The notes under the pieces are model-generated. The model searched no databases. It saw only the letters and a program-made list of their open reading frames with translations, and was not told the origin of the DNA. A program made the position numbers and the translations under genes. Positions 8,669 to 30,222 of a DNA stretch of 64,000 bases are shown piece by piece (within the stretch, counting starts at the first letter, position 1; each line of letters starts with the position of its first letter). The stretch lies in the sequence record NC_048779.1; one strand, given 5' to 3'.

Positions 8669-10076
8669 CGCATACATTGTTACACCCGTTAGGATGCTTT
8701 TTATTCGCCCTTCAGGAAAATACTAAGTAGTTGTAGATTTTGCCCAATCTATCAACTCTTCCCTTTGCTCTTTAGTGATTGTTTCTAGGTAATAGAACTT
8801 CCAACCATCAACCACTTTGGTTACACCACGCTTTAATGCTGTTGTAACCATCTTTTTACTTAAATCGTGTGTTGTTCTAAATTCATAAGCTGACTCAAAA
8901 AGGATTATTGTTTCACCTTCTTTGGCAGCTAACACTTTCTTAGGAGCACGAGATAACAACTTCTGTTTTAACTCATCAGTCAAAAAGTCAAAGTTATTTG
9001 TACTCTCTATTAGAACGTAGTGTTTTTGGAACAACTTTGGAAAGTCGCTGGTAGAAATACATTGCGAGACGGTCTGTGACCTACACTTGAAGTGTTCAGA
9101 AACCGCTTTCATAGTTGGAAACTGTTTGACTTCACCGGTAAAAAGATCCATGCATGATATCTCTCTACGGTAGGTCTGTTGCTCCCTTTCATGTCTTCTT
9201 AATTTCTGGACGCGTTTATCCGACGATTTAAGATGTTCTACTTTCCAGCCGTTTAACAACAACCCCTCTTTAATACTTTTCCAAACTTCAGCTATTTCGC
9301 ATGAGAAGAATTCGCACGCATGAAGGAAGTTGTTCAAGTACTTTGTTTCATCATCTTTGGTTATAACGATGAGTGGTCGTTTAGTATAACGATTTAAAAG
9401 TGTCGCATGAACGTTGTTTTGTTCCGGTGTTACCCAATCTACATTAGTAGACTCATTGTTTGTTATGTCTCCATCTATGTGGTTCCCATGTTGATTTTCC
9501 TCAGGCTCACCATGAAAGGTTGTTAATATGAGCCTGTGGACCCCTTTGGTGGTAAAAGTGCCATCAGGTAGCACCACCATAGTTGTTATGTATCCGTCAC
9601 CGTTGGTGTAGTATTCAACCTCTGTTTTATCAGGGTTGTAAATCCGTCCATCTTCAGTGGCGTAATAACCTTTAGTGTTAGGTATTTCTTTCATATTCAA
9701 CTTTTTTTGAAGGACTACGGGTCGTTACTCCGCTGAATAACCGGGCAAGGTCATTCTCCGATGCTTTCACACCGGGCGAGACTATATCTTAGCTTCATCA
9801 TTCCTTGAATCCACTCTTCCTGTTCGAGGAGACTTCTCCCCACCTAGTCGTTGAACGTTACTCTACGTGAGAGTCTTCGCTGCTGATTTCCGATTGATAA
9901 GAGCCCTTAGCACTCCACACTTATCCTTGGTGAAGTTGGTTTTCCATTAAGCTTAGGTCATCTCTATTTTTATTTCTGACTTTCGTCCACATTCATAGTC
10001 GATCACTCAACTATTGTAGTAAATAGAGCTTTACGGGGTTCCAGCAATTAAAGAAGTTTAAAGACGGCAATAGTTC
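8669..10076 (-). mobile_element. Group I intron, 1408 nt, in the RNAP catalytic motif
   Basis: P1 pairs exon GACGGU with intron GCCGUC with a U-G wobble at the splice site. Core elements: P AATTGCTGGAAC (10038-10049), Q AATCAGCAG (9880-9888), R GTTCAACGACTA (9845-9856), S AAGATATAGTCT (9779-9790). Ends in G. Confidence 0.92.
8723..9700 (-). CDS. Intron-encoded HNH homing endonuclease with C-terminal DNA-binding repeats, 325 aa
   Basis: GYYATEDGRIY (NUMOD4-like), KGVHRLILTTF...GNHIDGDITNN...NVDWVTPEQNNVHA (HNH); lies 3' of the intron catalytic core. Confidence 0.9.
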   Translation of the reverse strand: MNMKEIPNTKGYYATEDGRIYNPDKTEVEYYTNGDGYITTMVVLPDGTFTTKGVHRLILTTFHGEPEENQHGNHIDGDITNNESTNVDWVTPEQNNVHATLLNRYTKRPLIVITKDDETKYLNNFLHACEFFSCEIAEVWKSIKEGLLLNGWKVEHLKSSDKRVQKLRRHEREQQTYRREISCMDLFTGEVKQFPTMKAVSEHFKCRSQTVSQCISTSDFPKLFQKHYVLIESTNNFDFLTDELKQKLLSRAPKKVLAAKEGETIILFESAYEFRTTHDLSKKMVTTALKRGVTKVVDGWKFYYLETITKEQREELIDWAKSTTT

Positions 10077-11498
10077 ACCGTCGAAATCAGCGTTAAAATT
10101 GGACACAGACAGTATTGGGAGTCCAATAGATTGGTCTCCCAGATCTCGTTTAATTCGCGCAAAGAAAGTGCGACGAGACAAATACTGAATGGATGGCATA
10201 CGACCTGCTTTACACACGATGTCATTGCGTTCTTCATGGTAAGTGAAGAAAGCGTCGATATCGGGGTCGAGGTAGTGGGCAGCTTTACTGATCTTGGTCA
10301 GCGCAGCCATCGGTGAGTAACCTTTACGATACAAATGGGACAGTATCTGTTTCTCTAACTGGGCGAGCGCCATTATCCATGGAACTTCTATCATTCCCGG
10401 ATTATGTATCCCCGTCTTAGAGGTGATTACTGAACGACCTGTCATCGGTAAAGAGCCAGACGCCACCAGTTTACGCGCCGCTCCCGGTTTAGGGAACATG
10501 AAGTCCTTTAAATGGGCTGAGTTTTGTGCCGCTAACGCCACTATCCCCTTACCAACACGATCAATGGATTCTTGGATATCGAATTCATTGACTTGGTATA
10601 GGTCAGTGTTATCTTTAGTATCAGCGATGGACATGTAAGTTGAATCCATCTTTAGCTGACTTGAAGAAGCGTAACGTTCTTTACCCGCCTTTTCAATAAC
10701 GGTAGAGAGTTTATTAGGTATCGGGAGATACTTAGTGAAAACAATATCCTTGTAATCAAAGTAACCCAACATAATCTCTTTAGCATCGGAATTCTTAAGT
10801 GCTGTTAAAGTTCGACCTTCACCTAACAAAAAGTAATCCATGATGGTATCAGCATTAACAACAAACTCGTTGAGATCGAAACGAGTCATCAGACGTTTTA
10901 AATGAGATTGGAGATCACGGAGTTTTTCCGAACTTTGTGAATTGACCTTACGACGATAGGTTGGATCGATGATGTAAGTGATGATCTCTATCTTAGGTGA
11001 AGCTGTTGCGATCTTTTGCAAGTATGTCTTGTAGAACGCAGGGTTGATGAATGATTGGACACCAGTAGGTAGGCGTAACCAAACTTTGGTCGATAACTCA
11101 GTATCAACTAAGCGCTCCACTTGGTTACCACAGTTTCTACAAACCCGTCCAGAACCAATTAAATGGTTTCCCTTTAAAGGTTTATCACAACCACACGACG
11201 CGATGGTTTCAAAAGTGTCCGTATCAAAGTCCACACGAATCAGCTTCTCCAAACGTTCACGATCTTCTTCTAAACAGAAGTCGTAGTCGTTCAGATAAAC
11301 AGGTTGCGACTTAGATGTATCATGGGCGTAATTGAAATCACGGAAGTCTGGATAAAGCGGAGCGTAGTAACTAGGATCGTCGAAGAATTTCTTCCCGGAT
11401 TGTTCCTGATAACGCTGGAACTGTTTGATAGGAAGCAAATCGTCAAAAGATTCCTTTGCTAATACCTCTACTGCAATATCTTTCGTTGGAGACGACAT
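10077..11498 (-). CDS. Exon 1 of nvRNAP beta' N-terminal subunit (phiKZ gp55-like), 474 aa; spliced product 533 aa
   Basis: Zn-binding CGC...CRNC; KAGRMPSIQ motif; ends NFNADFDG; directly downstream of chimallin as in phiKZ. Confidence 0.92.
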
Positions 11499-13659: not shown

Positions 13660-13739
13660 AATTGATCCTTTATTATTCGGGTTTCAATATTCAATAACGT
13701 TATTAAACATTAAGGCATCGCAATAATACCACTTGCTTA

Positions 13740-13765
13740 ACACCTAGGTTATATAGGACTGAAAA
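13740..13765 (-). promoter_or_regulatory. Candidate chimallin promoter TTTTCAGTCCTATATAACCTAGGTGT
   Basis: Near-copy (23/26) of 7295-7320; intergenic, ~80 nt upstream of the first ATG. Confidence 0.7.
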
Positions 13766-13881
13766 TATTTAGGAACTTCAAAACCTTTCGATTTTATGTC
13801 TCAAATATTTCAATTCTGGTCCTATCCACCCCAACCTTACGGCTGGAGAAAGTTTTATCTACATATAATGGACACACAGTT

Positions 13882-20414: not shown

Positions 20415-21380
20415 TTACCAGACCATCCCGGAATTGTCAGAGCCCTCTGTGAGGTCCTTAGAACGGGACTTAGTGAATTGGGTCTGACGTTCTACCGCTT
20501 TTTCTTTAGAACGCTCCATATCATTGATGATCTGTTCTGTTAGGCTATCGTACTCAAGCATCATGTGTAGTTCACCTGTATCGTTAGGAGTGATCGCATC
20601 TGGATGCATTACGCCCGTCACACGATACCCTTTACCGATTTGAACGGAACGGATGTCGTTACGAGAGCTGTATAGAGAGAAACTCGCTACCGCACTACCT
20701 TGACGTTTATCGATAGTCAGACCATCATAGAACTCAATACGAGTAAGAGATGGTGGGATATCGACCGCGCTAGAGTAATCCAACAAATGACGGATGTCCT
20801 CGTAGTCTGACTCTTCGTGTTTATCCGTTAAGAACAGCGATAGTAGGTTGAGACGCTCAACAGCGATTTTGTTTAACTCACCACGAGTTAAAGCTTCGTC
20901 GTTTTGTAACACATCCATTACGACCGGCATATCAAAATGCTTACGCTGACCATCCAGAGAACGCAGAGTCGCAATCGTGTTGTCCAGTTCGATGTCCGTG
21001 GTTTGATCGATCACGAGGAACGAAACTACCGGAATACCTGCTTCCATAAGGGCACGAACTAGGAAAGGACCAATGGTAGAACCTGACGCACCCGCACCAC
21101 TGTAAATCACAACGTTGAAATCCCCCGCTTTATGTTTCACCAACATTTGGTTAACAAAATCAGGAATGAGATCACGATTCAAAGTACGCTTCTTACCACC
21201 ACCGCGAGTGTTCGGTGGACACTCTAAAATGAACGAGTCATCATCCGGTTTATTGTTGGTAGACGTATCTAAACCGATGAACTCTACTTTAGAGATAGGA
21301 AGGTTTCTTAACGACTTCTTCCATGCAGAACCGATGTTAATACCCGCACCACCAATACACCATGCACGTAATGTAGACAT
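20415..21380 (-). CDS. phuZ: PhuZ phage tubulin, 321 aa
   Basis: CIGGAGINIG, GLDTS, RGGGKKR, SGAGASGSTIG tubulin/FtsZ GTPase loops; Chimalliviridae context. Confidence 0.93.
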   Translation of the reverse strand: MSTLRAWCIGGAGINIGSAWKKSLRNLPISKVEFIGLDTSTNNKPDDDSFILECPPNTRGGGKKRTLNRDLIPDFVNQMLVKHKAGDFNVVIYSGAGASGSTIGPFLVRALMEAGIPVVSFLVIDQTTDIELDNTIATLRSLDGQRKHFDMPVVMDVLQNDEALTRGELNKIAVERLNLLSLFLTDKHEESDYEDIRHLLDYSSAVDIPPSLTRIEFYDGLTIDKRQGSAVASFSLYSSRNDIRSVQIGKGYRVTGVMHPDAITPNDTGELHMMLEYDSLTEQIINDMERSKEKAVERQTQFTKSRSKDLTEGSDNSGMVW

Positions 21381-21421
21381 ATTAAACTCCTTTAAAGTTT
21401 AGTTAAAAATATTTAAAATGC

Positions 21422-21851
21422 AAAAAAGCACCATCCCCTTCGCCGGGGATGGTCAAAGCAGTGGAACTCAGTGCCAATACTGAAATTACCCGAACTGGAT
21501 TCTTACGCGGTCGAAGAACCCAGCCGGCTAGCCTCGGCTTAGCATCCCTTGGTGGAGTGTAGGAGCTGAGGAAACACTCTCCATTTTTAAAGCGGTCAGG
21601 GGTGTACCGCTGTGGACGCTGAGTTAAAGGCTCAAGCGTCCTACGAACAAAAGTAGTGGCTTCTGTCCGAATAGGGTGGTTCAGGGGATGGCTTTAGTGA
21701 CATCGATGTTGACAAGGAGGACTCCCCCCTGAACCAGAATAGTTGTGAGCGGTTGTAATGAAGGAATAACTTCCTAGGTCGGACTCGCGGCATACACCTT
21801 TTCTTTTCGGACACGCTAGTCTAGCTAAACCTAATCTTGTACCGCTCACAT
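21422..21851 (-). ncRNA. Putative ~430-nt structured ncRNA of unassigned family
   Basis: No ORF >=60 aa. Perfect helices 21841-21850/21744-21753 (10 bp) and 21677-21687/21726-21736 (11 bp); 8-bp crossing pair 21806-21813/21664-21671; several more hairpins; promoter-like motif at the 5' end and terminator at the 3' end. Confidence 0.7.
21430..21453 (-). terminator. Terminator closing the structured element
   Basis: ACCATCCCC/GGGGATGGT stem followed by GCTTTTTTG. Confidence 0.8.
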
Positions 21852-21859
21852 ATAATGTA
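21848..21859 (-). promoter_or_regulatory. Promoter-like motif TACATTATATGT at the 5' end of the structured element
   Basis: Near-identical motifs at 25611-25622 and 30194-30205; resembles phiKZ early TATATTAC and contains the late TATG start motif. Confidence 0.6.
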
Positions 21860-21878
21860 CCTTGGGTTAGGAATTAAT

Positions 21879-22580
21879 TTAAAGACGGGTGTGTTGTTGA
21901 TAACGTTTAGGTCCCATTCCATATTTTTTCTCGAACTTCACTACGAAGTAACTAAAGTCGAGGAAGCCTAACTCCTCAGCGAGTTGACGCACCGACTTAT
22001 AGTAATTAGGTAGCTTGGCATGCGCTTGATTTAAACGCAAGTCTAATACGAATTGTTTCAACCCAAATCCATAGTGATGATTGATAATCAACTCTATTTC
22101 TTGGTGGGTTAAACGGAATCGGTCCGAGAGGGTCTGGATACTTAAACCGGTATCTTTGTAATGTTTCTTGACATGATCTAACAAAAACGTCTGACGTTGC
22201 ACCGTTAACTTGGGATGGGATTTAAACAAACCCCAAGCTAAATCACTGGTCTTCGGTCGGTTGCGATAATTTAAAGGGTACGTGCCAAATTGCTTAATGA
22301 AATTTTCTCTCAGCGTTTTATGATTAGTGTACCCAATTGCTCTGGCGATAGAGGTTAGGTTAAGATCTGTGTCGTCTAAGAGTTTCTTCGCTTCTAACAT
22401 TTTTAAATGGGTGATGTAATCATACAAACTCCCTTCACCTGCATCACGGAATAGTTTAATGACTCTAGTGGGTGAGATCCCTGTTTTCTTTAAAACTAAT
22501 TCCGAAGCATTAGGTTCCAAACAATATTTCTTAGCCGCATTTTTGAGCTTCTTGAACTCTCTGGAATTCTTATCAGACAC
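21879..22580 (-). CDS. Tandem double AraC/XylS HTH-domain protein, 233 aa
   Basis: ...AKKLLDDTDLNLTSIARAIGYTNHKTLRENFIKQFGTYPLNYR and ...SVRQLAEELGFLDFSYFVVKFEKKYGMGPKRY; no effector domain. Confidence 0.88.
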   Translation of the reverse strand: MSDKNSREFKKLKNAAKKYCLEPNASELVLKKTGISPTRVIKLFRDAGEGSLYDYITHLKMLEAKKLLDDTDLNLTSIARAIGYTNHKTLRENFIKQFGTYPLNYRNRPKTSDLAWGLFKSHPKLTVQRQTFLLDHVKKHYKDTGLSIQTLSDRFRLTHQEIELIINHHYGFGLKQFVLDLRLNQAHAKLPNYYKSVRQLAEELGFLDFSYFVVKFEKKYGMGPKRYQQHTRL

Positions 22581-23298
22581 AAGCGCCTCTCAAAGTTTCC
22601 CGGAGTTCAACGATATTAACCCCGTAGACTTCTTGGTATTGCTTCCGTAAATAGGTCGCACTACAAGAACCTACAGTAGTCGCCAAGTCTGTAATCTTAA
22701 TACTTGGATTTTTGTGGAGTAACTCCTTAGCTAATTTCATCCTAGTATCCTTTCTCCATTCACGATAGGTTTTACCGTAATAGTGTTCAAACATTTCACT
22801 TAAGCTACGATCTGGTAAACCAAACTTCTTTTCTACATCGGCGTAATTGAAATTGACTTTGATGTTTTTAAGTAGGTAATTCAATATCTTCTCACGCAAC
22901 TCATTAGGATAATATCGGTCCATAGTTTCTTTAGAATAAGAATCCATGGTCGGAACCTCGAGGGAATCCGTGTAATCTTCACGAGGGTGTCGTTTAAAGT
23001 AAGCCTTGTACTCTTTGGTAAAAGATTGGAAGTGAGAATACCCAACGTGGGCTCCAGCTAGTGTAGGTCTGATGCCCGATTCTAGCAAAGCTTTGGCTTT
23101 AACTAAGCGTTTACGTCGAAGATACTCACCCGGGGTGGTATTACGTTGTTCAGCAAACAAACGGTAGACATCCGGGATAAACACACCTAGTTGATGACTT
23201 AAGTCTTTGACCGTGACTTTTTCTAGGTAGTGTTCATTTATCCATTTGTCCAGATCTTCCATTAAACGAATTCTGGATTCTTTATCTACAGGGTACAT
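22573..23298 (-). CDS. Tandem double AraC/XylS HTH-domain protein, 241 aa
   Basis: TTPGEYLRRKRLVKAKALLES...VGYSHFQSFTKEYK and RMKLAKELLHKNPSIKITDLATTVG...YQEVYGV. Confidence 0.88.
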   Translation of the reverse strand: MYPVDKESRIRLMEDLDKWINEHYLEKVTVKDLSHQLGVFIPDVYRLFAEQRNTTPGEYLRRKRLVKAKALLESGIRPTLAGAHVGYSHFQSFTKEYKAYFKRHPREDYTDSLEVPTMDSYSKETMDRYYPNELREKILNYLLKNIKVNFNYADVEKKFGLPDRSLSEMFEHYYGKTYREWRKDTRMKLAKELLHKNPSIKITDLATTVGSCSATYLRKQYQEVYGVNIVELRETLRGACV

Positions 23299-24464
23299 AA
23301 TTCAGTTTCCTTTATTTTACCCAGACGGATATCGTCTTCTCTAATACATAAGTCGGCGTTAGTTTTAACAAAGCGAACAAACTGCTTGGTTTTGTTACGA
23401 CGAGTAAGTGGACCTTTATGTTTACGGATCTCCGCAGGAGTCAGTCCGTAGTTAGCCATTAAGTGTCTTCTGATGTCGTATTCATAATCCGAACCAACCT
23501 TCCTTAAGATCTTAGAAAACTTCCAACGAGTGTTTTGTAAAAAGTACACCACTATTTCCAATCGGATGAATAAGCGCGCCTTACTAGGTAACATGCCTGT
23601 GTAAAGAGTAAACATTCTTTCCCAAGAAGAAGTGTTTACTCCGTAAAATTCTCTCAGCTCAGTTAAGTGGGGACGATTTTCAAGCAGGTTTTCGGTAACG
23701 TTATCCACTATCTCTTCCATGAGGGAAGGGAGTATCCAGACGTTTTCACCATGGACTTTGGCCCACATACCGATAGATTTTGATTCACCAAATTCACTGG
23801 TAGTCATACCGTACTTTGCTTTAAAAGCTTTATTAAGTCCAGTAGGGGCGTTGTAGATGGTCATTTCCAGTAAACGGGTTTCTTTATACCCGTGAGTTTT
23901 GATTTGCTCGGCAACGTACTCTAGTTGCTTATTTAACAAATAAGCCCTAGGAGTTACTCCGTGTAGTTCAATGAATTTCTGTCTAATGTAAGTGGTGGTG
24001 TAAACACTGTCGTTTATTAATACATTGACGTCTTTGTATAAGTACGGATTAAGGTCGATCTTTTCAACGATGGAGCTGATAACCGCATCGACTACACCTA
24101 AACTCGGTCTTTTTGATTTTAACCCCATGCGCGCACGGACCTTAGTAGGGCGCTCTCCAAAAACGGATAAATACCAAACGTAAAAGTTTGATGTTTTATC
24201 ATACCCTAAGGTTTTAGCGATTTCTTCTAGTGAAAGTTCACCGTCAGAGACTAAACGCTTAGCTAAATCCTTACGTAACTCTTTCAAGTGATGTGTAGGG
24301 GTTTCTAAACCTTGATTTAGAAAACGCACAGTCAATACATCTGGGGCGATGTTTTGCATTTTTGCAATGTCGACGAATTTACGTTTTTCTTTATAATGCG
24401 CATTAATGTTCGCTATTGTGGTCAAAACGATTTCATCGTCGATTCCTAGTGTATCTATGGACAT
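23286..24464 (-). CDS. Triple AraC/XylS HTH-domain protein, 392 aa
   Basis: Three ~100-aa units ending FGERPTKVR, YGMTTSEF and YGLTPAEIR; first unit has LSLEEIAKTLGY. Confidence 0.82.
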   Translation of the reverse strand: MSIDTLGIDDEIVLTTIANINAHYKEKRKFVDIAKMQNIAPDVLTVRFLNQGLETPTHHLKELRKDLAKRLVSDGELSLEEIAKTLGYDKTSNFYVWYLSVFGERPTKVRARMGLKSKRPSLGVVDAVISSIVEKIDLNPYLYKDVNVLINDSVYTTTYIRQKFIELHGVTPRAYLLNKQLEYVAEQIKTHGYKETRLLEMTIYNAPTGLNKAFKAKYGMTTSEFGESKSIGMWAKVHGENVWILPSLMEEIVDNVTENLLENRPHLTELREFYGVNTSSWERMFTLYTGMLPSKARLFIRLEIVVYFLQNTRWKFSKILRKVGSDYEYDIRRHLMANYGLTPAEIRKHKGPLTRRNKTKQFVRFVKTNADLCIREDDIRLGKIKETELCTL

Positions 24465-25315: not shown

Positions 25316-25381
25316 GTTGAATCTACTCCTACTAACGTTATTATCCTAATAACTTAAATGACTCAGTTTTATATCCCTTTG

Positions 25382-25389
25382 GTAATATA
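25382..25389 (-). promoter_or_regulatory. Early promoter motif TATATTAC
   Basis: Exact phiKZ early consensus, ~65 nt upstream of ATG 25315. Confidence 0.65.
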
Positions 25390-25435
25390 GAGATATAATT
25401 CCTTTATCTGATTACAGCAAGTTTATTACATGAAC

Positions 25436-25622
25436 CTATACTCGTTATACGTAGTACACTCCTTTTATCGTGTTTACGTACTTCGTACTACAACACTCAC
25501 CGTGACTATTCGTACCTCATAGATCACTCTAAGGAGTACTACTATAACTCGTATGTAAAAATAACCCTTTCCCATCCTTTTCAGGGGGTCTTCGACGGAT
25601 TCTTTTTAGTACATATAATATA
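25436..25622 (-). ncRNA. Putative structured intergenic RNA (element 2)
   Basis: 18-bp interrupted stem (25444-25464/25531-25548) enclosing two hairpins (multi-way junction); TATATTATATGT motif at the 5' end. Confidence 0.45.
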
Positions 25623-25643
25623 TTATCCGTTAAGAAATAACTT

Positions 25644-29440: not shown

Positions 29441-29833
29441 TTATAACTTAATAGGTGGTACGTTGTAATGTAAGATTAATTCATTATTGTGGATAATAGG
29501 TAAATCGATAAAGTCTAGTGCTCTACTACCTATAAAGCTAATTAAACTGTCCTTATCTAAATCCCCGAACGTATTTAACTCTACTCGTTCTCCTAATCCA
29601 TAGTCTAACGTCATATCACTATACCCTAGTTTAACTAACCCTACGGTACGTAACCTATAACGCTCTCCTATTCGCTCTAGGTGAACCTCTAAGCGATAAT
29701 ACGGTGGTTTTAACTTATTACGGACCTCGTAAGTCTTAAGCAGTACTTTATGATCTCCTTCCTCTAGTACTAACCCTACTCCTAAATGTAACGCTCTACT
29801 TACTAATCCCGCTAATACTTCTTTTTCTTTCAT
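29441..29833 (-). CDS. Hypothetical protein, 130 aa
   Basis: ORF; RLRTVGLVKLGYSD motif. Confidence 0.75.
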   Translation of the reverse strand: MKEKEVLAGLVSRALHLGVGLVLEEGDHKVLLKTYEVRNKLKPPYYRLEVHLERIGERYRLRTVGLVKLGYSDMTLDYGLGERVELNTFGDLDKDSLISFIGSRALDFIDLPIIHNNELILHYNVPPIKL

Positions 29834-29884
29834 GGTCTAATAACCTTAATTAACGTATAAATATTCAAAATGCAGTATAAACCC

Positions 29885-29914
29885 TAGTAGGACTCCTTAA
29901 CGGATATCCTACTA
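29885..29914 (-). terminator. Hairpin at the 3' end of intergenic element 3
   Basis: TAGTAGGA/TCCTACTA 8-bp stem. Confidence 0.45.
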
Positions 29915-30205
29915 TGCATCTATGCCTTCTTAACGTATGACTCTTTACCTTAACCACTTCACTCGTGATACTCGTTACGTTGTAAGGAAGTCATACTCTA
30001 TAGTTAGATATATTAATATATTAATATTAATTATCTTGGGCTTTGCCCGATTCTTTTTAACTAACTTTGAACCACTAACCTTGGAACCCTCTCAACCTTG
30101 GAACCCCTCTTTCTCCCCTTACGAAATTGCATTTTAGGGTGCAAAATCATAGGGAAAATCGTTCAAAAAAGTTAGGGTAAAAAGGTTTTTGTAACATATA
30201 ATACA
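29885..30205. other. Intergenic element 3: structured RNA or replication-origin-like region
   Basis: AT-only run 30008-30034, 13-bp direct repeats 30077-30089 and 30094-30106, stem 29935-29942/29989-29996, TGTATTATATGT motif at 30194-30205. Confidence 0.45.
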
Positions 30206-30222
30206 TGTTACTTAGTTTTTAA

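Follow-up and report, generated by a model that had tools for sequence, protein, structure and literature searches.

The phuZ-side RNA amongst described systems

GOLLD and ROOL, large ornate RNAs of phages and prophages with structures obtained by cryo-electron microscopy (bioRxiv 10.1101/2024.12.08.627333), are the described molecules closest in kind to the element considered here, a predicted RNA of about 428 nt read from the minus strand directly ahead of the tubulin-like gene phuZ in Vibrio phage USC-1, an Aphroditevirus jumbo phage with a genome of 238 kb. All positions refer to a 64,000-nt stretch of its sequence record (NC_048779.1), termed the window throughout. The likeness to GOLLD and ROOL is that all are phage-borne, extend over several hundred nucleotides, appear to comprise many hairpins together with pseudoknots, and are without an assigned function. 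GOLLD and the USC-1 RNA both combine a conserved 3′ region with a variable 5′ region; GOLLD rises in lytic growth, and the USC-1 RNA is headed by a putative late-type promoter. Palindromic loops make intermolecular kissing contacts in GOLLD and OLE, and the USC-1 RNA harbours the self-complementary sequence ACAUCGAUGU. Differences lie in size, context and sequence. GOLLD and ROOL measure ~580 to >800 nt, whereas the USC-1 family measures 430-580 nt; they often stand beside tRNA genes, whereas ARAGORN found no tRNA or tmRNA in the 64-kb window; and the USC-1 RNA, unlike them, belongs to a jumbo phage of Gram-negative marine Vibrio/Photobacterium. Moreover, the GOLLD and ROOL covariance models give no match to the USC-1 RNA at E <= 10.

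Smaller RNAs, in which a start site is closely followed by a terminator, have been described for phages 201phi2-1 and phiKZ (PMC11512511). These resemble the USC-1 locus in that a chimallivirus carries a phage promoter, a structured RNA and a terminator upstream of a conserved gene. They were, however, chosen as being <250 nt, form simple hairpins, and the conserved example precedes a tail gene and not phuZ, whilst the USC-1 RNA exceeds them two- to threefold in size, has several domains and is, by prediction, pseudoknotted; no sequence relation between them was found. Attenuating leaders such as riboswitches and T-boxes also place a structured RNA right upstream of a gene and end it in an intrinsic terminator, and the junction sequence AAGGGAU of the USC-1 RNA similarly has two possible partners. 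They differ from the USC-1 locus, where a promoter-like motif lies between terminator and gene, and where the alternative pairing is lost in one metagenomic lineage (L028, introduced below). The block GGUGUAUACCGCG of the USC-1 RNA resembles the T-box sequence GGUGGNACCGCG, and serves as a lead only; T-box and riboswitch models return no match, and the T-box-like block is >300 nt from the terminator and not within an antiterminator.

With regard to known families, the absence of any match to tmRNA, RNase P, 6S, signal recognition particle RNA or an intron, as asserted in a first-pass annotation of this DNA, is upheld by ARAGORN and by scans with Rfam 15 (4227 models, including group I and II introns, GOLLD, ROOL, OLE, raiA, HEARO, T-box, riboswitches and small ribozymes), which place no family within the RNA. 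At gathering thresholds the window yields a group I intron at 9758-10086 only. At E <= 10, positions 21300-22000 produce noise of 12-16 bits, compared with gathering scores of 44-80, and the 640-nt version from phage phiKT1019 produces zero matches; at E <= 1, nothing falls within the RNA at eight homologous loci. Likenesses noted by eye to RNase P CR-I/CR-V, to PK1 and the 5′ end of tmRNA, to the T-box and to P7 of group I introns were rejected, both the models and the order of elements being negative. Full-text literature searches returned no description of such an RNA, but only the small RNAs of phiKZ and 201phi2-1 and, besides these, general remarks that phiKZ makes non-coding RNAs. As an RNA family it has no detectable relative, its newness being one of structure and sequence rather than of a demonstrated function. 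The group I intron itself lies on the minus strand and matches the full RF00028 model at 54.8 bits; an open reading frame (ORF) for an HNH_3 endonuclease is found just downstream (8723-9700, minus), and the intron follows ORF 10011-11498 (no Pfam match), which it appears to split.

A modular fold read from the minus strand

That positions 21849-21422 specify a real, selected and structured RNA of a new family is a conclusion we hold with great confidence. The locus is a 498-bp gap, on the minus strand, from an AraC-type regulator gene (21879) to the start of phuZ (21380), and the RNA stretch within it is identical in Vibrio phage 5 TSL-2019. As the first-pass annotation had it, this stretch is richer in GC than its surroundings (0.51 vs 0.41 in the flanks) and is devoid of ORFs of >=60 aa, the two longest of the minus strand reaching 57 and 51 aa and the longest of the plus strand 37 aa. 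When folded as minus-strand RNA it reaches -164.3 kcal/mol, compared with -130.0 +/- 6.4 kcal/mol for dinucleotide shuffles (z = -5.4); the plus strand is weaker (z = -3.2).

The gap can be aligned in all five sequenced relatives, with homologous regions of ~430-580 nt that differ by lineage-specific insertions. It is 498 bp long and 95% identical to USC-1 in Aphrodite1, 638 bp and 84% identical over the shared parts in PDCC-1 and 2 TSL-2019, and 640 bp and 74% identical over 59% of the query in phiKT1019. Apart from a 37-aa plus-strand coding sequence (CDS) in the RefSeq entry for USC-1, no genes are annotated within these gaps. A PhuZ search of public assemblies added three metagenomic lineages (L026, L027 and L028; PhuZ 58-62% identical), each of which has a gene-free gap of 490-600 nt ahead of phuZ. 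Six hairpins read by eye, together with the 3′ halves of the five isolates in which they lie, went into a covariance model, R1; it finds full-length matches in L026 (78.7 bits, E = 4e-22), L027 (46.8 bits, E = 2e-12) and, with filters off, L028 (18.2 bits, E ~1e-4), the weakest member. Homologues are present in five isolates and three metagenomic lineages, which amount to only six independent lineages. The alignments consist of long invariant blocks between variable parts, with whole hairpins inserted or deleted as units; for example, ~140 nt of central sub-domains occur in PDCC-1, 2 TSL-2019 and phiKT1019 and are missing from USC-1 and Aphrodite1. Between lineages the 3′ half of the RNA is 55-76% identical, compared with 41-53% for third codon positions of phuZ, and this excess indicates that the 3′ half is under selection.

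Comparison of these sequences shows that the product, as judged from its pattern of substitutions, works as a minus-strand RNA and not as a protein or as duplex DNA. No reading frame is conserved across the lineages, in which the longest ORFs vary in strand, frame, place and length; the 57-aa ORF of USC-1 is already disrupted in Aphrodite1 at 95% identity, indels of one and two bases fall within conserved blocks, and tblastn of the USC-1 ORFs gives the near-identical 5′ block of PDCC-1 as its sole match. G-U pairs are invariant or frequent (e.g. GU in all eight sequences at column pair 160-211), and as they would turn into C-A mismatches if the plus strand were read, the minus strand is the RNA strand; the orientation of the terminator fits the same strand. 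The 37-aa RefSeq CDS, HWC35_gp140 (hypothetical protein; 21449-21562, plus), lies inside the RNA on the opposite strand. Its counterpart is unannotated in Aphrodite1, PDCC-1, 2 TSL-2019 and phiKT1019, and it is probably a spurious call.

The comparison likewise shows a modular arrangement, read from aligned sequences, in which a 5′ domain closed by helix P1 is followed by a central hairpin region that gains and loses sub-domains and by a universal 3′ core of six hairpins, Hx1-Hx6 (Table 1). The last of these is what L028 retains alongside a much smaller 5′ domain, marking the 3′ core as the universal part. Hx5 stacks directly on Hx6, the base of which is invariant (CGGCUG...CAG-U-UCG) and is followed by GRRUA. 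In the alignment to R1, 94.3% of 3′ core cells form standard pairs, and 29 of the 47 pairs are changed on both sides, compared with 9.8 +/- 2.3 in shuffles, a number reached in none of 500. When the partners are slid by 1-3 columns as a control, only 3-8 pairs are changed on both sides. For the whole structure, a plain MAFFT alignment of the five isolates has 92.2% of cells paired and 13 compensatory pairs vs 6.6; the slid controls and this plain alignment point in the same direction as the figures from the fitted alignment.

Most of the helices first noted in USC-1 alone are retained in this model. Hairpins GGACGCT/AGCGTCC, AGCGGT/ACCGCT and CTGGGTTCTT/AAGAATCCAG all show compensatory changes, whilst AGCCG/CGGCT gives way to a covarying hairpin, GCUA-GC/GC-UAGC, that is stacked on the next helix, and TCAGT/ACTGA is weak, with 77% of cells paired. 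The predicted pseudoknot is a different one from that first proposed. An 8-bp pairing of 21806-21813 with 21664-21671 is complementary in USC-1 only, already broken in Aphrodite1 and without counterpart in the other lineages; over five relatives 65% of its cells pair, none of its pairs covaries, and three to four of five sequences lack the C-G pairs at its centre. Similarly, a suggested switch between CCCCTG and CAGGGG proves specific to USC-1, as Aphrodite1 has CAGAGG and the other lineages have unrelated sequence. Instead, CCCU in the loop of Hx3 may pair with AGGG in the junction between Hx4 and Hx5, a long-range contact compatible with all lineages. In alignment A9 this contact is formed in 94.4% of cells, and three of its five pairs change on both sides, vs 0.8 when shuffled (reached in 10 of 500); in L028 the same columns read CUCUU and AAGAG, and an extra C and an extra G are present in phiKT1019. 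Support for a pseudoknot that joins Hx3 to the Hx4/Hx5 junction is moderate, and comes mostly from the weakest member of the family.

The 5′ domain is best defined by its closing helix. The 10-bp helix originally drawn at 21841-21850/21744-21753 exists and covaries, although 9 bp lie within the RNA and the tenth falls upstream of the likely start. P1 is seen as GUGAGCGGU/ACCGCUCAC, GUAAGCGAUGC/GUGUCGCUUAC, GUGAGCAAGUGA/UCACUUCGCUCAC and GUAGGGA/UCCCUAC; in L028 a helix that begins at +1, GUUCCGGUAGUUAA/UUAACUAUCGGAGC (read by eye), closes the smaller domain. Inside the 5′ domain, the pairing of helices P2a and P4 is weak or inconsistent between lineages. The blocks GUCCGAA and GGUGUAU(G/A)CCGCG are invariant in five of the six lineages and absent from L028, and the irregular hairpin predicted to hold them (21821-21782) is beyond a covariation test because its sequence does not vary. 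GUCCGAA could also pair with a 3′ UUCGGR, perfectly in phiKT1019, but with a break (C-A) in L026 and L027, and this pairing competes with the base of Hx6.

The 11-bp helix at 21677-21687/21726-21736, which forms the stem of the central hairpin, was correctly drawn from the outset and covaries even between USC-1 and Aphrodite1 (G-C to A-U). Its variants are GGUUCAGGGG in USC-1, GGUUCAGAGG/UCUCUGAACC in Aphrodite1, CAGUCCAGAA in PDCC-1 and CAGCCCAGAGA in phiKT1019. A variant contig of the phiKT1019 type has seven differences, all within the central domain, amongst which one C-G pair becomes U-A, two Watson-Crick pairs become G-U wobbles and one wobble becomes C-G. The apical part of the hairpin includes the 10-nt palindrome ACAUCGAUGU (21709-21700, minus), which is kept in USC-1, Aphrodite1 and phiKT1019 and reads CAUCGAUG in PDCC-1 and 2 TSL-2019. 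Its self-complementarity could give either a hairpin with a UCGA loop or a self-kissing contact between two copies of the RNA.

Table 1. Positions of the proposed RNA, its predicted elements and the flanking features (window coordinates unless a contig is named)
Feature	Position	Strand	Basis
Proposed RNA, ~428 nt, GC 0.51	21422-21849	minus	Bounded by TATG and terminator; fold z-score; homologues; no conserved ORF
TATG motif, G at 21849 as proposed transcription start	21849-21852	minus	Invariant in six lineages, directly ahead of the 5′ helix
5′ domain closed by P1 (21849-21841 with 21753-21745)	21745-21849	minus	Covariation of P1
Irregular hairpin with blocks GUCCGAA and GGUGUAU(G/A)CCGCG	21782-21821	minus	RNAalifold prediction
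Central hairpin, 11 bp	21677-21736	minus	Stem covariation in all isolates
Conserved 3′ core, Hx1-Hx6 plus tail GGGUA	21485-21666	minus	Model R1; compensatory changes
Hx1	21666-21647	minus	
Hx2, loop CCUUUAA	21641-21614	minus	
Hx3, loop ACACCCCUG	21611-21591	minus	
Predicted pseudoknot strand 1, CCCU in Hx3 loop	21598-21601	minus	Pairs with AGGG, 21549-21546
Hx4, loop with CCUCAGCUCC	21579-21555	minus	
Junction AAGGGAU	21550-21544	minus	
Predicted pseudoknot strand 2, AGGG in Hx4/Hx5 junction	21546-21549	minus	Pairs with CCCU of Hx3 loop
Hx5	21543-21527	minus	
Hx6	21526-21491	minus	
Hx7, weak variable hairpin in length-variable spacer	21467-21484	minus	77% of cells pair; no compensatory changes
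Intrinsic terminator ACCAUCCCC-GGCGAA-GGGGAUGGU, then GCUUUUUU	21422-21453	minus	Terminator scan
Motif TGCAUUUUAAAUAUUU, outside the RNA, between terminator and phuZ ribosome-binding site	21404-21422	minus	Likeness to TGCATTTTGAATATTT
phuZ, tubulin-like, 321 aa	20415-21380	minus	Pfam Tubulin; RefSeq 'tubulin PhuZ'
Last of three tandem AraC-type (HTH_18) regulator genes	21879-22580	minus	Pfam HTH_18, HTH_AraC
Miami-like region	L034:1646-2580 (Logan ERR10977394); L039:1991-2980 (Klebsiella phage Miami)		

Proposed ends of the RNA and its relation to phuZ

In phage phiKZ, the non-virion RNA polymerase requires for transcription a late-promoter motif, TATG, the G of which is +1 (PMC4666361). The G of the TATG ahead of the USC-1 RNA is the first base of helix P1 in every lineage, with its partner ~97-110 nt downstream. 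Given the motif, the position of P1 and the phiKZ rule, the 5′ end is placed at 21849, and the RNA would span from there to the U tract at 21427-21422, i.e. ~428 nt. The promoter-like motif of the first-pass annotation survives in this altered form only: a sigma-70 promoter scan gives none on the RNA strand, and the conserved TATG at 21852-21849 stands in its place. An extended motif, ATTATATGT, heads three other gene-free stretches on the same strand (13660-13881, 25316-25643 and 29834-30222, all minus), which are AT-rich; the ATTATATGT site at 25611 is followed by a terminator-like hairpin within ~55 nt, and the stretch 29834-30222 closes with the motif TGCATTTTGAATATTT, much as precedes phuZ.

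At the other end, the strong terminator claimed at the outset is confirmed on the minus strand as a 9-bp stem with 6 GC at 21453-21430, followed by GCUUUUUU. It is found in every lineage, ~40 nt before the phuZ start codon in all of them, with variation in the loop and the top of the stem. The stem sequence CCAUCCC/GGGAUGG is conserved across the lineages and the adjacent spacer is not, its length from the Hx6 tail to the terminator stem being ~30 nt in USC-1, ~70 nt in L026 and ~140 nt in L028. Between terminator and ribosome-binding site is the motif TGCATTTTRAATATTT, which recurs before the gene at 29833 (two instances only); there, TGCATTTTGAATATTT, near-identical to TGCAUUUUAAAUAUUU, is located ~35 nt before the start codon. 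Early promoters of phiKZ have a T-rich tract and an extended -10 box (PMC8244752), and from the two instances in USC-1, TGCAUUUUAAAUAUUU is possibly an early-type promoter belonging to phuZ itself.

We put at about even the chances that 21849-21422 (minus) is a separate gene for a structured, pseudoknotted non-coding RNA that stands alone and acts in trans. The phage non-virion RNA polymerase would transcribe it late, inside the phage nucleus, from the G of TATG; transcription would halt at the intrinsic terminator, and phuZ would start from its own promoter. The RNA would then act as a folded scaffold for a specific partner, perhaps a protein of phage or host, perhaps a second kind of RNA or additional copies of the same one. 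Such a partner might be held by the invariant single-stranded loops CCUUUAA, ACCCCU and CCUCAGCUCC, and also by the junctions AAGGG and CAGUUCGRRUA and the 5′ blocks GUCCGAA and GGUGUAUACCGCG. The stand-alone interpretation is favoured on account of the promoter-like motif beyond the terminator, the variable spacer before it, and the size and modularity of the RNA.

Several observations tell against a separate, trans-acting RNA, or temper the evidence for it. Its position directly before phuZ is fixed in every lineage, and the unusually conserved CCAUCCC of the terminator stem can pair with the AAGGGAU junction; both would fit a role in cis as well. No RNA-binding gene is linked to the RNA, and nothing points to a partner. 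The start, end and timing are read from motifs borrowed from the Pseudomonas phage phiKZ, and ATTNTATGT sites in the window are not above chance (6 vs 3.5). In addition, the pairs were counted on alignments fitted to the model and on related sequences, such that shuffle controls overstate significance, and the most conserved elements never vary, which places their apparent pairing or partner beyond a covariation test.

The fixed position raises the possibility, in our estimate an unlikely one although the foremost alternative, that the element is a cis-acting leader of phuZ, with a late transcript from TATG that ends at the terminator in some cases and continues into the gene in others. In such a leader the AAGGGAU junction would alternate between the pseudoknot with the Hx3 loop and an antiterminator pairing with the 5′ half of the terminator (CAUCCC), the large fold serving as a sensor for some protein or metabolite, or for the state of infection. 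The RNA is indeed on the same strand as phuZ, always directly upstream and ending ~40 nt before the start codon, and a terminator right before a gene is the usual layout of an attenuator; most small RNAs found in 201phi2-1 were, moreover, 5′-untranslated-region products of premature termination (PMC11512511). The junction can pair with the 5′ half of the terminator in six of seven sequences, at -7 to -10.7 kcal/mol, a strength comparable to that of its pairing with the Hx3 loop, and conservation of the terminator stem beside an unconserved spacer is as a switch would have it. This pairing, however, displays no compensatory change, whereas the competing loop pairing covaries, and L028 loses it (-3.7 kcal/mol) whilst keeping the junction-loop pairing by compensatory change. 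Nor is a spacer that ranges from ~30 to ~140 nt between core and terminator like a coupled expression platform, and 430-580 nt with dispensable sub-domains is far above known attenuators. The promoter-like motif between terminator and phuZ, common to another gene, may also speak for separate transcription units. A related idea, that the Hx2 loop CCUUUAA masks the phuZ Shine-Dalgarno sequence (UUAAAGG), was rejected: 221 of 500 shuffles (44%) reach 7 nt, and the pairing does not covary in L027 or L028.

Looking upstream rather than downstream, the RNA could belong to the AraC-type operon and not be a separate gene: as the structured, untranslated 3′ terminus of that mRNA, or a cleavage product thereof, it would stabilise or terminate the message. 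Between the AraC-type stop (21879) and the RNA there is no terminator, the only candidate being a weak one inside the gene; the two share a strand, and the clade that has the RNA also has the three AraC-type genes. This origin is nonetheless improbable, as in all lineages the closing helix starts with the G of TATG, which is hard to explain without a 5′ end at that point, and a stabiliser needs just a terminal hairpin and not 400 nt of conserved multi-domain fold. A catalytic role, be it as a self-processing ribozyme or as a degenerate or unusual group I-like intron between genes, is less credible still. Ribozymes typically share its size, its predicted pseudoknot and its unvarying junction nucleotides, a GACU...AGUC pairing in the 5′ domain is reminiscent of P7, and the genuine group I intron and HNH gene of the window, with comparable size, a pseudoknotted fold and variable peripheral insertions, demonstrate that such elements move in this genome. 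Yet the library that detects this intron at 54.8 bits (RF00028), 11 kb away, gives the phuZ-side RNA no ribozyme or intron match at E <= 10 in either its short or its long version. Furthermore, the RNA lies between complete ORFs in all annotated relatives, with no exons to join, and appears to have its own promoter at the first base and a terminator at its end.

Conservation at the level of DNA, whether as operators for the AraC-type proteins, as a PhuZ-linked site for replication or partition, or as a slowly diverging spacer, seems the most remote of these explanations. Three genes for DNA-binding regulators adjoin the RNA, several blocks are invariant, and plasmid TubZ systems have centromere sites beside the tubulin gene. 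Nevertheless, the substitutions preserve base pairs, including G-U pairs valid on the minus strand only, hairpins are inserted or deleted whole, and the minus strand has the better fold z-score (-5.4 vs -3.2); no iterated repeats are seen in the aligned sequences by inspection, no repeat search having been run.

Neighbours, distribution and significance

The order AraC-type genes, RNA and phuZ is found in the five isolates, in L027 and in the phiKT1019-type contigs L045-L046, i.e. those with upstream sequence; in L026 the upstream gene is partial and has no recorded Pfam hit, and the contig of L028 begins within the gap. The three tandem AraC-type genes span 21879-24464 (minus) and encode proteins of 233, 241 and 392 aa, each composed of two or three HTH_18 modules without a ligand domain. 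The trio, an odd set of regulators for a lytic phage, is kept 5′ of the RNA in L027 and in the phiKT1019-type contigs. On the phuZ side, a block of the 5′ leader, CUAAACUUUAAAGGAGUUUA (21400-21381, minus), is the same in USC-1 and L026, whose PhuZ proteins are only 62% identical, a constraint that exceeds the need of a ribosome-binding site alone.

As far as the data reach, only six lineages, all of Vibrio/Photobacterium-type phages, have the RNA. The region ahead of phuZ gave no match to R1 in Klebsiella phage Miami, Shewanella phage FishSpeaker, Aeromonas phage pAEv1810 or the more distant contigs L032-L038. Scans of IMG/VR with three core patterns returned four isolate genomes and otherwise chance matches only (assessed with nhmmer, covariance model and by eye), and a scan of GTDB, with one genome per prokaryotic species, returned two chance matches, both negative with the covariance model. 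In JGI metagenomes a PhuZ alignment picked up two PhuZ loci only, both distant; phage genomes contained no blastn match to the RNA of L027 or of L028, and a second PhuZ search yielded no further lineage. The first-pass annotation thus appears right in calling this an undescribed large structured non-coding RNA, but not in attributing it to nucleus-forming phages generally, since it occurs in Aphroditevirus-type phages and three relatives only. Of the scaffold, decoy and ChmC-cargo roles suggested there, the one involving ChmC draws no support from these data.

In Miami-like phages, with PhuZ ~40% identical, a gene-poor and strongly folding region (z = -4.2) of 900-1000 nt lies upstream of phuZ. 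It includes a 46-nt block, 89-91% conserved across seven genomes, that harbours a hammerhead-like core, CUGAUGAG-stem-CGAAAC, scoring 20.9 bits with RF00008, which is below gathering, and lacking stem I; in stem II, a C-G pair of L034 is U-A in Miami. The region may represent another RNA, larger than that of USC-1 and in the same place in the genome, with no detectable relation to it. A likeness of CCGGCUGG...CCAGUUC to a segment of L034 was rejected, as it is not present in Miami and the segment pairs locally in the predicted L034 fold.

Large RNAs with complex folds are few outside rRNA, RNase P, introns and tmRNA, and new classes of large RNA have tended to show unexpected biochemistry, as with the structures of GOLLD, ROOL and OLE. 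No large, complex-folded RNA has been described so far in nucleus-forming jumbo phages, the RNA biology of which is barely charted; in these phages RNA is made inside a protein shell and then exported. Whilst confinement to one small clade limits its significance, the candidate RNA offers defined ends, a predicted fold with a pseudoknot, and natural minimal and expanded versions. With culturable phage-host pairs at hand (USC-1, Aphrodite1, PDCC-1 and phiKT1019), the function of so defined an RNA is directly addressable. A tentative extension, in our estimate an unlikely one, is that it may be the first example of a novel class of large, ornate RNAs, produced late in the phage nucleus of Aphroditevirus-type jumbo phages and building a higher-order assembly. 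Were this so, the conserved 3′ core and the palindromic or C/U-rich loops would build an RNA-protein or RNA-only assembly that performs some step of infection within the nucleus, for instance by sequestering a host or phage factor or by coupling to PhuZ-dependent trafficking, a function that would be without counterpart amongst described RNAs.

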